Origin: Macrostomum hystrix | Lineage: Eukaryota > Animalia > Platyhelminthes | Direction of reading: 5' to 3' | NCBI GenBank assembly: GCA_950097015.1 | Contig: CATNEN010000001.1 | Span: 9,920,001-9,984,000 of the forward strand | DNA: 64,000 bases | Part shown: positions 57,514-64,000 of the stretch, one piece after another | How the letters are laid out: each line of letters opens with the position of its first letter | Position numbering within the stretch: position 1 is the first letter of the stretch | Notes under the pieces: generated by a model | Seen by the model: only the letters and a program-made list of their open reading frames with translations | Told to the model about the DNA's origin: nothing | Databases searched by the model: none | Translations under genes and position numbers: made by a program

Positions 57514-60045
57514 ATGCCGATCCCCCCAAAGCCGCCAGCGCTGCAGGTGACAGCGGTCACTCATCATTCCCTCGAGCTGTCTTGGGAGTCGCTGCACACC
57601 AAACTGTCCGGCGTGCTCACACCGGCCGACGGAAAACTCAAAGCTGAGGTTTAGCCTTTGAATGCTGATTTCGATTCTCAATAGTCACTTTTGTTCGTTA
57701 GCCAGTGAAATTTTTACTGTTATTCCGAAGTGAACTAACAGGATATTGCTCATTAGCCAAAGCAAAGGATAGATCAACTAGACTAGAGTAAGTGCTAAAA
57801 CAGCTCAGGGGCCCATATTAGGAGCTTCAAGGGCCGCATCTGGCCCGTGGGCCGGTTCCTGGACTACAAAGCACTAACCACTGGGCCATCGCGTTTCAGG
57901 TTCAAGTAAAAAAGTTCGAGCAACAATCGGACGAGCCGTCCACCTGGGACTTGGCCTACAAAGGCTACGACACTCGCTGCAGCGTTACAGGCCTGTCAGA
58001 TAGTCAGGCCTACTATCTGCGCTTTCGCTTCGGTGTAGAATCTGGCTGGAGCGAGTTCTCAACGCCGCAAGCCGTGAAGACAGCCAGGCGACTCTACACT
58101 GGCGAGGATCTGCATCGCCTAGTGCGACTGGATAAGGGCCCGGAGCTGCAGCGCGTGTTGGACACCGGCGAAGCCAATCCGAACGCGCCAGACGACAAAG
58201 GCTTCAGCCCGCTGATGCAGGCCGCGCTGGCGGGCAAAGGCAAGTTCTGCGCGATGCTGCTGGACCACGGAGCCGAAGTGGACTGGTGCGGAGAGAACGG
58301 TGAGGCTGCAGTCTGGACCAAACACTGGCCAAATATAACCACGAAGGTTACTGAATCCTTTAACATCTTGCTTTGTCATCTCCTATCTTGAATTTATCTG
58401 CATAGGCCCTCGAGTGTAAGTTGCAGAGCCCCGCTTTGTGCGGCCTGCTCTCGTCTCCACTTGCCGTCTGCTGTTGTCTCTGGTTGTCAGGTTTGCCAAC
58501 CTGGGATAAATTGTCTGATTTCTATCCGTCTTTTTTCTCCTAAGTCTATTCTCTCGTATGCCTAGCCGCGTCAGATTCGTCAATCTCTCGACATTGGGTC
58601 TATATTAAGGTTAGAAAACATGGACACATATTGTATGGCACCGGAGGATGCAGTGACTGGTATAGGAGCCATGGCCTGGGAGGGTCATAGTGAAGGCCCG
58701 GATGTAATTCCGGGTTTGGTTCAGAAGGACCTTCCGGAGCCGGGACTGCAACTCTGGATTGGCAGCTCGTGGCGTCCCTCCATCGGGTTTGATAGATAAG
58801 TTGGTGCTCCAGTATTTTATCTAACAGAACTGATTTTTGCGTCACTTTTGCGTTACAGGCAAGACAGCGCTCATGCTGGTGGCCTACCGAGGCGTGCTCC
58901 CCAGCCTGCGCCAGCTGCTGGACAGAGGCGCCAGTCGTCGACGACGAGATCGCAAAGGCTCCACAGCGTTGCACTACGCGGTTGACGGCGAGAAACTCGA
59001 TGCCATCAGCCTGCTGTTGACTTATCAGCGAGAAATCAACCCGCTGGAGGAGCCTACAGCTGACGAGGAGGCGAAGCGAGACGCACCTCGCACTGAAGAT
59101 GTGACAGCAGCTGAACTGCTCGCAGCCAGAGACGGCAGCGGCTGTTGCGCGATCATTCGTTGCGCAATGCTGAAGAACAATGGCAACCCGGATGTGACCA
59201 AGGCGCTACTGACTGCCGGAGCCGATGCCGACGCAATCGATGATCAGGTAACACGCGGTGTTATTATGTTAAATTTTCATTTTATTCCCGTATATATGCA
59301 CGTACGGCATCAACTTAAAAACGGTACACGTGTACTTTCATGATCACAGAATTTTGGGTTATTAAAGGTGAAGAGAAAAAACTAACCCAGTTGAGCTATT
59401 ATAGTTTAGCACAACTAGTGACACAGCTGCAGCAGCTATTGTGCTTGCCTTGTAAGGCTTGCGTACAAGCTACTTGTTCAGTCTATGGACTGAGGAAACG
59501 CCACACACTGCGGCTTCCTCCGTCTGACACGCATTTTACAGAGAATTCGAAAGTGGACATTGCCGCAAGATGAGAATTAGTCAGATGTGTGAGTGCGTGC
59601 CTGCATACAGTATCTGCGTGCATGTGTCCTCTGGAGTCAGCGGAATGTGCAGAATTGCATCCTCGCTGGCTGCGGGTCTACTGTCACCAAATGAAGTACT
59701 ATCACCCGCAGCCCTCTAGCAAATATTCAAAATATTTTACTATTATATACAGTATGAATTAGTGCATTAAGTTTCAAGTAAATCAGTGGTGTGAACATTC
59801 TCATTCGCGTCATTCCCCTTTGACTGCACCAGGGTCAGACGGCCCTGTTCTATTGCGCAATGCATCGCCACCTGCGCATGGCGGAGCTGCTGCTTGACGC
59901 CGGAGCAGACCCCGGCAGGCCCAATGCAAAGGGCGTGACGCCGGCAGCCGTGGCTGAGGCGCAGGAGAGCGCAGCGATGCGGTCGCTGCTAGCTAGACGA
60001 GCTGCAGCTGTTGCTACTACAAGTAGTCCATCAGCAGTCAACTGA
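57514..60045 (+). CDS. FANK1: Fibronectin type III and ankyrin repeat protein; exons 57514-57648, 57900-58299, 58859-59247, 59833-60045 (true start may be upstream, frame open from acceptor at 57403)
   Basis: PPKPP...VTHHSLELSW matches the FANK1 FN3 start; YKGY...V.GL...Y..R. Ankyrin repeats GFSPLMQAA, GKTALMLVA, GSTALHYAVDG, GQTALFYCA. Introns are GT-AG and phase-compatible. Confidence 0.9.
59585..59727 (+). mobile_element. SINE family A 3' fragment in FANK1 intron
   Basis: GCAGAATTGCATCCTCGCTGGCTGCGGGTCTACTGTCACCAAATG...CCGCAGCCCTC matches the family tail. Confidence 0.8.
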
Positions 60046-60690
60046 GTTTTGTAGCCTAATTTTTTAGAGACCGTCTAACTGACCACTTGACAATAGATCG
60101 AAGGATAACGTAAATTTAATGACGTAATACAAACAGTTTTGCCTTGGATAGGTAGCGAAAAAGCAGCCCGATCTCGTCTAGAAACTTTGGTTCCCTGGAA
60201 TTGAGAAAATCCACATGTACAAGTATTTAAAATCCTAATGTCCATGAAATATATACTCGAAATTTGTGTGCAACAATAACAAAAAGTCAGACATTGAAGT
60301 ATAGCTCTCAAAATACATGTCTTTATTTTGCACTGAAATAACGATGAAACTTTATTGTGCCTGAGCGAGTGTGTATTTAAAAAATCAAGGCTGGATAACT
60401 ATCGCGCTGTTTTTTTAGTAAAAACATTTTCTTGTCATTTTTACTTGGCGTGGTTAAGATGTGGACATAAAAAATTCAAAATGACGCTTGAATTTAACGA
60501 GGTAAAAAGAGGTTCAAAAAAGAAAATTATTTTTTCACTGAATATTTTAGCTATAAGAAATTTTCACAAAATCTAAATTTTTAATTTCATCTGTTAGACT
60601 TCTTCGGGCTTGTGGAAATAAAAGAAAACTGAAGTCGAAGATCGCGAGATAGAGCATATTCGCTGCCATGCGTGTTGCAGCACACGAAAA

Positions 60691-60807
60691 TGACGGCGGT
60701 GGAATGAATTTCAGACAGCGGGCGCCCGTCTTAGCTGACGGCCAGCTCGATTGGAGACTGGTTTTTCACGCCACAGACTGTCGTCATGCGTCCTGGTCAC
60801 ACCGTCA
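60691..60807 (-). promoter_or_regulatory. Candidate SECIS element (atypical) in the selenoprotein 3' UTR
   Basis: Minus strand: UGACGGUG/CGCCGUCA helix I; core AUGAC (60787-60783)...UGAA (60713-60710); GACAG/CUGUC and GGCG/CGCC helix II; unpaired AAAAA (60766-60762). GC-rich island in an AT-rich UTR, upstream of AATAAA signals at ~60325 and ~60353. Confidence 0.65.
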
Positions 60808-61139
60808 GATTGCGTGGCTACTACACCAGACAAACTTGCAAATTACTCTACTATTAGTAGCAGATAATATTGTTAACATATAGTTAAATAGTGTGTATTT
60901 TACTACCTGGCACTGCAAGACTTGCTATTTAAAATAATACTAGCTAACGAGGTATTTGCTTTGGATAACTAACTATTAATAATTATCGATATAAATTCAA
61001 ACCTTCTCGATTGGTTGATCGATTGAATTTTTGTTATGCAAGTTATCTATCCAAGCAAACATCTCACTAGCTATTTCTATTTCTCTTTGAGAACTGTGAA
61101 TTTCTCTTTTCAGCATCTTAGCAGCTCATGGCCTTCGTG

Positions 61140-61407
61140 TTACAGCAAAGCGCAGCCAGGACTTTTTGAATCCTGCAGCACGTTAGGCGACTCGCCATTC
61201 AGCGCTCGCTTCACCTCCTCAACCACCTGGCCCTCGTCCGGGAAGCCGTGCAGCTTCAGCTTGGAGAAGATCAGCTGATTGTTGATCGTCACCTCGAAGC
61301 AGCCGCGCCGGCCGTCCCTGCCGGTAACCTGAACCTCGCTGGGGCACGCGCTGAGAATGGCTCTGCGCAGGTGCTCGTAGCGGGGTTCGTAGCCTCATCC
61401 GCTGCCA
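61140..61407 (-). CDS. MIEN1: Last coding exon of an Rdx-family selenoprotein (SelW2/MIEN1-like); UGA-Sec at 61397-61395; first exon not found in window
   Basis: After acceptor CTCACAG| the frame reads xGSG-U-GYEPRYEHLRRAILSACPSEVQVTGRDGRRGCFEVTINNQLIFSKLKLHGFPDEGQVVEEVKRALNGESPNVLQDSKSPGCALL*. It has Rdx motifs G.FEV.IN.QL.FSKL...GFP and a terminal CAAX as in MIEN1. Confidence 0.88.
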
Positions 61408-62981
61408 CTGTGAGTTTTGTGTTGTTTGGACAAGGGTTAAGAGTTAATTCATGTACAGTGAAAGCGTTAATTTTTAACTCAACTGATGTTGGCACCCATT
61501 GTCTCGCTCAAGGATATAAATTGCATTATTTCGGTTAAGACTCGAACTTCCGACCTCTGATTCAGAAGTCTATAGCTCTAACCATCAAACAAGCTCATTT
61601 TTAATTTTAAAAATAAGCCCATCTCTATTATTAATAGCAACTAACTACAAGTTTCAAATCGAAAATAAAACTAATAAACATATTGTGTACTAGGTGCTTA
61701 CAAATACTGTCATAATGTTGTCATACATGTTTAATAAGTTCTTAGCTAGGGCATACTTACAATTTTGACAGGTCTCTAACAACTATATTTTTTAACTTCT
61801 TAACTCAACTTCTAAAATTTTTTATATATATGCGAGTTGTGTTATGACTGATTGTCATGAGCGAATAACTTTAAATTGCCAACAGATAATGACACTATGG
61901 ATAATAACTCAAGCCTTGAAAGCATGCTTCTAACAGTAGAAAGACAATGGGGGCATTTCAAATACCCGCTGCCTATTTCACAATACCGAACCAAACCAAA
62001 TGACCCATTTTTCGTGAAAATCCATCATCTGAATCAAATTTTTCTGCCCTATACGATGAACTAACTTTCAAAGTCGTCCGACGGCAGCATCGTTGTGATA
62101 TTCAGCAATTCTTGTCGGAGACCCTGGTGACAAGGACAACTAACATTGCTCAACATAAAACTATTTGGTGAATCCATATTGGTTAAAAATGAAAAAAGAA
62201 ACATTTTAATCAATCCAAAATAGTCAACAATGACAGCCGACATTACTACATGATAATGTAGTGACATTTCTGAGCAAAAATTGCTACTTTAAATTAGTTT
62301 TTTATGCCACCAGACACCCTGACAAGAATCATTGAATATCTCAATGATGCCAATGTTTTGTAATTCTGGAAGTTGTTTCACCGGATAGAGCAGAAAATTT
62401 TAGCCAGTGTTCTGGATTTTCATGACATTTTTTTGAATATTTTGTGAGATACAGAAAAAAATTGTGGGTATCTGAAATGCCCCGTGGTAATTTAAATGCT
62501 AAAGGGTGGGATGAGAGTTGAAAATCCATTATAGAATGATAGAAAAGCAAATGAAAGGGAAAACAAATATTCACAATATTATTTCTTTGTTTATATGAAT
62601 GTGCTAATTGCATTAATCCATAATAAATTGCATTATTTTTTAATTGCTGGATGTGGTACAAGTTTATGAAAATGGAATGCTACTTTAAAGTTTAAAACCC
62701 AATTTCTGGTATGACTTTGCAGTGAAAACCCTGCTATATACACTCATTGATACCCATTCTAAAGGAGATTCATAGATGTATGAGCCTGAGCACCATATCT
62801 ATAATCTATAACTATCTATAACTATAAGCACCATATCTAACCTAGTCACTTGTCAACTGATGTTTTGTCAAATGGTTGATGAAGTGACAAGAATTAAGAG
62901 TGCCCTAAATAGTAGTTGACAAATTGACCAGATTTGCTGAGGCTAGAAATCTGTGGTTGACAAAGTGACCTAGCTTTCTTG

Positions 62982-63341
62982 GGGTGCATTTAAACAGCTT
63001 AGAATGATTTAAACTGGATTAAAACTGCATTATATCAATTATTTTTTTGATTAAATTTGGTAAAACATTTTATTTCAGGAGACATTCACAACTTTTCCTA
63101 AGTGTATTCATTCTTACAATACAACTAACTGCTCTAAAATATAAAAAACATGCTTGGACTAACAATGATCCGAAAATATTAACCAAAGGCATTACAAGAT
63201 GCTTAAACTGCAATTGACTAAAGCACACCAAATTTATCATCAAATTTCCATAAATTTACTTTGTTTTACTGATGTAGTTAAAATGTTGTTCTAAGCCAGT
63301 TTAAATAGATTTAAGCCATTCTAAGCTGCTTGAATGCACCC
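62982..63341. mobile_element. MITE-like element with ~30-bp imperfect terminal inverted repeats
   Basis: GGGTGCATTTAAACAGCTTAGAATG ... CATTCTAAGCTGCTTGAATGCACCC; flanks TTG / TTA (possible decayed TTA duplication, PIF/Harbinger-like). Confidence 0.65.
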
Positions 63342-64000
63342 TTAGCTGTTTTGTAAACTTGTTTTCAACTAGCTGTAGAATATAATATGCAAAGTGCAAT
63401 ATGCAACATAACTATGAATATGAACATTAAATCCACTTGGTTTACTACATACACTGCTACTTTAGTCCCCCACCAGTCATTGGATCCATGCCATCATCCA
63501 CCTTTTCTCTCAACATGAAATGCAAAGTAAAGAGCTGATTGACTATACATGTAACTACGTGTTAGTATATGACTACATATATAATAATTGTACATGTTAC
63601 ATGTACACCCGCCCAATAATGGCCAACATAATTGCTACCTGATGTGCATGAGTTTACATGGCTATACTAAACGGGGCAAACCTTGCTAATTGGTTCATTG
63701 GTCCTCTGCTAAAGGGGGCTAACCTTGCTAAAGGGAGCATAGTTTCTCTGCTAATGAGAGGCATTGTTCTTTGCTAAAGTAGTTCTCTACTATAGAGGGC
63801 ACAACAAGACTTTCCAGAAAAAATCACCAATGTTGTTGATTACATGCTTGCTGAACAAGGCATCAGCAAATAGCAGCCATCCTTTATTGAACATATTCAG
63901 GCCATGGAATATGTTTGGGGATAAATGTAGTAAATAATAAACTCAAATATATAGTATATATGTAACTTTTTTATGCCTATACCTTTTGGCTCTTAACTAG

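Follow-up and report, generated by a model that had tools for sequence, protein, structure and literature searches.

Does a TGA codon that interrupts a short, conserved reading frame end translation, or is it read as selenocysteine (Sec)? The question is raised by a stretch of 64,000 nucleotides from the flatworm Macrostomum hystrix (assembly GCA_950097015.1, contig CATNEN010000001.1, positions 9,920,001 to 9,984,000 of the forward strand), called the window hereafter. Near its right end, on the minus strand, an original prediction made from the letters alone had placed a hidden exon of a selenoprotein of the SelW2/MIEN1 kind, with a recoded TGA and a probably prenylated tail. The frame belongs to a real, transcribed and spliced two-exon nuclear gene, and there are strong grounds to believe that Sec is inserted at the UGA of this SELENOW2/MIEN1-type gene. 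The arrangement of the redox motif and the RNA element that would direct the decoding both depart from what is usual, and they are weighed below.

Gene Structure and Transcription

Translation of the minus strand from 61140 to 61409 gives SGSG, a stop, GYEPRYEHLRRAILSACPSEVQVTGRDGRRGCFEVTINNQLIFSKLKLHGFPDEGQVVEEVKRALNGESPNVLQDSKSPGCALL, and a second stop. The first stop is a TGA (61397-61395) followed by GYEPRY, and the frame then continues to a terminal CALL and a TAA (61142-61140). The coding part of this terminal exon (61140..61407) comprises the third base of a split Cys codon (61407), Gly-Ser-Gly, the UGA proposed to encode Sec, and an 84-residue Rdx domain ending in CALL and the stop. 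The exon is GC-rich amid AT-rich surroundings, with ...aaaactcacag directly upstream. That it had escaped the list of open reading frames (ORFs), as was first claimed, is essentially right: in the mechanical list, this frame is represented by nothing more than a 50-aa ORF that begins at an internal GTG (61140-61292).

To find exon 1, the upstream sequence of the minus strand, with 10 kb outside the window (L006), was scanned for GT donors that follow a split Cys codon and a peptide of the form Met...[hydrophobic]-x-[hydrophobic]-x-[aromatic]. A single candidate was obtained, ATG TCG CAA CCT GTA ATA GTT TCT ATT GAG TAC TG/gtaagt, with its end at window-equivalent 64844. It lies outside the window, on the minus strand, at G000:C1:9984844-~9984940 (L006:844-~940), with its ATG at L006:878-876, and supplies MSQPVIVSIEY and the first two bases, TG, of the Cys codon. 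The single intron measures 3,436 nt and has GT..AG borders (CT..AC on the plus strand). Its 3' part occupies 61408..64000, with the acceptor AG at 61409-61408, and it continues past the window edge to window-equivalent 64843.

Transcription was assessed with assembled contigs from four public runs (X6, X7, X1, and X2), which come from two studies and carry three organism labels, aligned to G000:C1:9980001-9985400 (L007, 5,400 letters). The joint 64844->61407 (1407->4844 on L007) occurs in the contigs of all four runs, and its acceptor is exactly the one named in the original prediction; it keeps the frame and precedes the TGA by 10 nt. Genomic DNA could not give such a joint, so the runs contain cDNA, and transcription and splicing of the locus are shown. 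Two of the three outcomes that were to count against a selenoprotein, a silent locus and transcripts that splice in downstream of the TGA, are both at odds with these contigs, since all four runs enter the exon upstream of it. The spliced mRNA reads ...GAG TAC TGT GGC AGC GGA TGA GGC TAC..., with the TGA 10 nt into the last exon and in frame with the exon 1 ATG, so that the gene model has two exons and 100 codons.

The TGA is unchanged in the contigs of all four runs. Contigs of X6 and X7 are identical to the window, and those of X1 and X2 differ from it at a few sites. Two of these strain differences fall in the coding part, one of them synonymous and the other a change of Glu to Gly, the residue found in Macrostomum lignano. 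No ATG precedes that of exon 1 in the covered 5' untranslated region (UTR), which extends to about 64931-64940, and no spliced leader was seen in the RNA contigs of the four runs. The locus is single copy in the genome (220 Mb, 42 contigs).

On L007, the 3'UTR is covered at 358-987 (X6), 436-991 (X7), 307-931 (X1), and 410-962 (X2), and again at 1037/1050-1407. The contigs run from the stop down to 60307-60436 and, together with the polyadenylation signals AATAAA at 60356-60351 and 60327-60322 on the minus strand, they indicate a 3'UTR of about 830 nt (60307..61139). Coverage is interrupted only at 60988-61036, where a long hairpin of this UTR has its apex, a kind of place at which assemblers tend to break.

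The 50-aa ORF that begins with GTG at 61292 could suggest that translation starts downstream of the UGA and yields an N-terminally truncated Rdx protein devoid of a redox centre. Such a start appears hardly credible, as there is no in-frame ATG after the TGA, conservation begins immediately past the TGA, and the spliced mRNA offers a good ATG, in frame with the TGA, that encodes the beta1 strand of the family.

Family Assignment and Position of the TGA

Database searches were performed with only the 84-residue piece that follows the TGA (window:61143-61394:-). This piece matches the Pfam family Rdx (PF10262) with 48.3 bits, over a cut-off of 22.6, and an E-value of 1.2e-12, along profile positions 11-73 of 74. 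Among solved structures, the best match is human MIEN1/C17orf37 (PDB 2ljk), with an E-value of 9.7e-13 over residues 1-83; the match to mouse selenoprotein W (PDB 2npb) has an E-value of 0.019. An exhaustive HMMER search returned 189 relatives at E<=0.001, and the motif and tail counts given below were taken among the 150 of them that were listed. Translation, profile, structure match and relatives thus agree with the exon as first described, with its TGA, its GYEPRY, its Rdx motifs and its terminal CALL, and the matches go well beyond what chance would give. Judged by sequence, the gene encodes a SELENOW2/MIEN1-group protein of ~100 residues with the thioredoxin-like Rdx fold.

In the alignment with MIEN1, the Gly directly behind the TGA is matched to the Gly after the second Cys of the CEPC motif, and the TGA itself to the Cys before GFEATY. 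In 34 relatives, the same Gly corresponds to the G[YF] that comes after C-x-x-[C/TGA]. Because the Gly after the TGA is aligned to the Gly after the second redox Cys, the TGA occupies the redox Cys/Sec position of Rdx proteins, which is where the original prediction needed it to be. Of the 150 relatives listed, 34 have a legible N-terminus of the form beta1-Y/F-C-x-x-[W or C]-G-[YF], and the Sec position is recorded as 'W' in 27 of them and as Cys in the remaining 7. A 'W' at a Sec site is the mark of gene callers that read TGA as a sense codon. Exon 1 provides the beta1 strand that ends in Tyr-Cys directly before the redox motif, like MSQPVKVHIEYC of the relatives, and its MSQPVIVSIEYC is close to the N-termini of other members, e.g., MSQPVKVHIEYCGGW followed by GYYPRY.

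The nearest protein is an 83-aa hypothetical protein of M. lignano, annotated as 'partial' (PAA64976.1 among the records), with 83% identity at 99% coverage. The identity spans the whole piece after the TGA, including the CaaX tail, and BOX15_Mlig033428g3/g4 of M. lignano evidently represents the orthologue or orthologues. These records start at YEPRY, just past the TGA and its Gly, and so confirm the expectation that annotation would truncate the protein; the N-terminus and the redox motif are consequently off record in that species. The UniRef entry A0A1I8HGK5, 'Selenoprotein W' of M. lignano, is a 397-aa fusion of two tandem copies that both start after the TGA, and the first copy in this fusion model appears to be without a CaaX ending.

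The Redox Motif

The redox motif of the gene reads C-G-S-G-U (TGT GGC AGC GGA TGA), with three residues between Cys and Sec (CxxxU). The original prediction had assigned the exon to SelW2/MIEN1, with reference to the CxxU-GY motif of SelW-family proteins. The family, the Sec site and the GY were borne out; the CxxU was not, and published phylogeny places invertebrate members in SELENOW2 rather than in MIEN1 proper (PMC13134290). We read the additional residue, from the sequence, as a lineage-specific one-residue insertion in the loop between beta1 and alpha1. In the literature that was searched, CxxxU was found for a selenoprotein only once, in kinetoplastid SelK, which is not an Rdx protein.

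The acceptor region, cacag/TGGCAG/C, contains two AGs 6 nt apart, both in frame. Use of the second one (AG 61403-61402, exon start 61401) beside the first would give a minor isoform with Cys-Gly-Sec, a CxU motif as in Sep15, next to the CxxxU form. Either acceptor completes the Cys codon (TG with T or TG with C), and a minor isoform of this kind would be compatible with Sec insertion at the UGA. In all four runs, the 61407 junction is the only one seen in the contigs, although contigs drop rare variants, and use of the second acceptor is regarded as rather improbable.

Selenocysteine Machinery and Other Selenoprotein Genes

The genome contains a tRNA-Sec (78.5 bits with Rfam; ARAGORN type SeC, anticodon TCA) and SepSecS, found in three exons with E-values down to 1.5e-38. 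It also contains two GPx genes, each with a single in-frame TGA, and a SelM-like gene that reads ESCGGURLN (CGGU). In none of the MsrB matches of the genome was an in-frame TGA present.

In three SelW-like genes, a TGA occupies the site that it has in the SELENOW2/MIEN1-type gene. Two of them are in tandem, 3.9 kb apart, at G000:C34:3944189-3948275 (L009 and L010), and the third is at G000:C39:19520727-19520909 (L011); their motifs are CGAU, CGSU, and CGAU, respectively, that is, with two residues between Cys and Sec. Exon 1 of L009 (MGKVKVHVVY and TG/gtaagc) lies 837 nt upstream, and the intron splits the Cys codon at the same position and in the same phase as in the SELENOW2/MIEN1-type gene. 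The acceptors of L010 and L011 are compatible with an intron of this kind. Two more Rdx loci, at G000:C37:4227127-4227315 (L013) and G000:C10:2554474-2554683 (L012), have neither TGA nor Cys at the redox position, e.g., ...LIVTVEYDRYIGRPQF..., and may be redox-dead Rdx paralogs by their sequence. A match to PF10961 (SelK) at G000:C5:3315796-3315990 (L028) was rejected, as it is a long tandem GA-rich array of GGTGAGAGGAAG(T/G)GTGAGACAGGTGGGGA-like units and not a gene.

The SECIS Candidate

A strict initial pattern scan for a selenocysteine insertion sequence (SECIS) found nothing. In a structure-aware scan, [A/G]UGAN and a downstream GA were required, the first pair of helix II was enforced in a constrained fold, and helix II had to be followed by unpaired AA and accompanied by a helix I duplex. 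The only strong candidate in the 3'UTR lies at 60807-60691 on the minus strand, inside transcribed sequence. Its helix I is formed by 60807-60800 and 60698-60691 and is followed by an internal loop. The AUGAC core (60787-60783) lies 353 nt after the stop and opens a helix II of 12 bp with three bulged nucleotides. The A-run AAAAA (60766-60762, within unpaired GAAAAA) comes after helix II, the fold closes with two apical hairpins at 60761-60742 and 60741-60726, and the 3' strand ends with UGAA (60713-60710). The fold energy is -61.6 kcal/mol.

Three strain differences fall in this element, all of them at unpaired positions. Two are in a hairpin loop, and one converts UGAA to the canonical UGAU. 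Their unpaired placement, which would be expected by chance in about 9% of cases, lends weak support to the candidate.

The relaxed scan was also applied to other selenoprotein genes of the genome, and four candidates were recovered in these controls: that of a Sec-GPx gene (L017 2039-2100), that of the SelM-like gene (L020, ~450 nt after the stop), that of a SelW-like gene (L011, 185-252 nt after the stop), and one in a SelL region (L029 ~6435). None was found for L009, L010, L014, and L021, which shows that the recall of the scan is limited.

The element at 60807-60691 is, on balance, rather likely to be the SECIS of the gene. A different, non-canonical element of the UTR could serve instead, the candidate being then a chance structure. 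The genes for which the scan recovered nothing leave room for such an element, as does the frequency of comparable matches, with 20 hits of a similar filter over both strands of the window (128 kb), which corresponds to ~0.13 per UTR length; the spacing of the A-run, discussed below, points in the same direction. On the other side, the candidate is complete in its core features (AUGA, the 3' GA, a 12-bp helix II, helix I and an A-run that is unpaired), no other match of the window scan is as stable per nucleotide, and its combined energy is -38 kcal/mol, compared with -19 kcal/mol for the next UTR candidate, which has a CUGA core. That the true SECIS lies elsewhere in the UTR is consequently considered unlikely.

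Other SECIS-like sites of the 3'UTR, namely ATGAG at 61129, ATGAC at 60438 and GTGAG at 61067 (part of the long hairpin), were rejected for weak energy, for want of a 3' GA or for 'cores' paired by Watson-Crick pairs. The long hairpin itself (60941-61073, minus strand), which lacks a SECIS core, is an imperfect structure of ~133 nt with -38.7 kcal/mol and a z-score of -5.2, and 200 shuffles gave no fold as good. In every run, the contigs are interrupted at its AT-rich apex (60988-61036). A regulatory hairpin and a small insertion of an inverted repeat are both possible readings of it; a repeat search detected no inverted repeat in 60880-61140, despite the long hairpin folded there.

A further structure lies in the coding sequence itself. 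The stem-loop at 61323..61394 on the minus strand has a main stem that starts 7 nt past the UGA, with -29.3 kcal/mol and a z-score of -1.87, and 10 of 200 shuffles are as good. At 61336, the strains differ by A>G (RNA strand), which would change an A.C mismatch of this stem-loop into a G-C pair. Sec redefinition elements are known from SelN, and the folding model makes this stem-loop a marginal candidate for one.

Decoding or Termination

Decoding of the UGA would proceed as follows. Exon 1 gives Met, the beta1 strand and the first two bases of the Cys codon, and exon 2 completes the Cys and continues with Gly-Ser-Gly, the UGA and Gly-Tyr... to CALL. The Sec machinery of the organism would decode the UGA as Sec, directed by a SECIS in the 3'UTR, for which the AUGA...AAAAA...UGAA structure at 60807-60691 is the most likely choice. 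The product would have a Cys-x-x-x-Sec redox centre at the beta1/alpha1 junction, and a geranylgeranylated CALL would tether this small selenol/thiol oxidoreductase to the cytosolic face of a membrane, as is the case for human MIEN1.

Several observations weigh against this reading and concern the redox motif, the SECIS candidate and the RNA evidence in turn. The two-residue spacing of the family is departed from here: a spacing of two is found in all 34 readable relatives, in a count in which spacings from 0 to 5 were allowed. With CxxxU unparalleled among them, the active site could be a decaying one. In the SECIS candidate, the A-run begins 16 nt after AUGAN (12 paired, 3 bulged, and 1 free), compared with exactly 12 nt in the four control candidates, and its two-hairpin apex is absent from all four of them, two of which have long apical stems. 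Its z-score of -2.2 is modest. The Rfam model SECIS_1 (RF00031) found no SECIS, whether applied to 8 kb, 1.3 kb, or 201 nt around the gene or to the whole genome. The same model was silent on seven control loci (L011 among them, the L020 gene not), as well as on 201 nt with the canonical-looking SECIS of the Sec-GPx gene (L017), so that its negatives carry no weight. Finally, all RNA evidence consists of assembled contigs, which show presence and junctions, not levels, RNA ends, rare isoforms or translation.

These departures invite the view that the UGA is a plain stop codon. The product would then be limited to a 15-residue peptide (MSQPVIVSIEYCGSG), the Rdx frame behind the UGA would be a recently disabled relic, and CxxxU would be a symptom of decay. 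The uniqueness of CxxxU and an atypical SECIS candidate that no curated model matches are in keeping with such a loss. A UGA in the last exon would moreover escape nonsense-mediated decay, so that transcripts would persist with or without decoding; by the same token, each failure of recoding would release the 15-residue peptide and leave the mRNA intact. Termination is difficult to reconcile, however, with a TGA that stands exactly at the Sec position of the family, where a TGA is also present in three paralogs of the same genome and in 27 relatives. The 84-codon frame is intact and has retained its high identity to M. lignano down to the CaaX box, and a SECIS-like element with a correct core lies inside the transcribed UTR. 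A purely terminating UGA is accordingly held to be very unlikely.

Insertion of Sec at the UGA remains the favoured reading. A more specific proposition, according to which the product is a functional CxxxU Rdx selenoprotein decoded through a SECIS with three bulges in helix II and a two-hairpin apex, is put forward only tentatively, as a possibility that falls somewhat short of being probable.

The CaaX Tail

The original prediction of a terminal CaaX tail was sound. The box Cys-Ala-Leu-Leu is encoded at 61154-61143 on the minus strand, and its X=Leu predicts geranylgeranylation. The tail is a trait of the SELENOW2/MIEN1 group that SelW1 lacks. A Cys at position -4 is present in 93 of the 150 relatives listed, and the last residue is Leu in 56. 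The ending is CNLL in M. lignano and CILQ in the newt, and the SelW-like paralogs of the same genome have no such tail. Human MIEN1 is described as geranylgeranylated by GGTase-I (PMC6738349). By homology and by the Leu at X, geranylgeranylation and membrane tethering of the CALL protein are likely.

Comparison with Known Systems

SelW2 has been described as Sec-containing in fishes, frog, and shark; in mammals, only the Cys homologue is retained, Rdx12 (present name MIEN1) (PMC3316567). A 2026 study placed all invertebrate members in the SELENOW2 branch, attributed MIEN1 to a jawed-vertebrate duplication, and found Cys forms only in amniotes (PMC13134290). The flatworm gene is therefore a co-orthologue of MIEN1 and not a MIEN1 itself; its placement in the clade rests on this published phylogeny and on the E-values. 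Two flatworms, the planarian Schmidtea mediterranea and Schistosoma japonicum, are reported to have SelW2 genes with Sec (PMC3828610). The gene is thus new in an already published family, and Sec forms in flatworms have also been published; no selenoprotein survey for Macrostomum was found in the literature search.

The SELENOW2 proteins of fishes, amphibians and invertebrates share with the flatworm gene the small Rdx fold, a Sec as the second redox residue, directly behind the beta1 'V-x-V-x-Y-C', the short first exon and a SECIS in the 3'UTR, which in M. hystrix is a candidate. They differ from it in having CxxU in place of C-G-S-G-U, and the flatworm SECIS candidate is distinguished by its bulged helix II and its two-hairpin apex. 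Human MIEN1 (C17orf37/Rdx12, PDB 2ljk), the best structure match with 83 of 84 residues aligned, likewise ends in a CaaX box with a final Leu, CVIL compared with CALL. Amniote MIEN1 has Cys (CEPC) where the flatworm gene has the predicted Sec. SELENOW1 (PDB 2npb) and the SelW-like genes L009-L011 have the same fold and Sec position but are much more distant in sequence, as the E-value of the mouse protein indicates. L009-L011 are further set apart from the SELENOW2/MIEN1-type gene by CGAU or CGSU and by the lack of a CaaX tail. The M. lignano orthologues, which end in CNLL, come closest and differ in being recorded as partial or fused entries that start at YEPRY.

Neighbouring Features

The selenoprotein gene is convergent with a plus-strand gene at window positions 57951-60045, which has GC-rich, ankyrin-repeat-like exons. 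The 3' contigs of this ankyrin-repeat gene reach 60267, ~40 nt from the 3' end of the selenoprotein gene at ~60307. Within the intron, a tRNA-like stretch at ~61520-61590 on the minus strand (...ggttagagctatagacttctgaatcagaggtcggaagttcgagtc...) received no tRNA call by ARAGORN and was discarded as a tRNA gene; it is possibly a SINE remnant.

Significance

Standard gene callers overlook this gene, and the records of its M. lignano orthologues are confined to truncated or fused fragments, which gives the present model its value for annotation. The failure of the Rfam SECIS model on every control selenoprotein gene tested here calls for caution in automated selenoprotein screens of flatworms. A SELENOW2-type selenoprotein with predicted prenylation would be added to the selenoproteome of Macrostomum, a model genus for regeneration and sex allocation. 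If the CxxxU motif and the atypical SECIS are both functional, they would provide natural test cases for the strictness of Rdx active-site geometry and of SECIS rules. The active-site loop of Rdx proteins and the SBP2/SECIS architecture would then be more tolerant than search models assume, and genes may have been missed for that reason.

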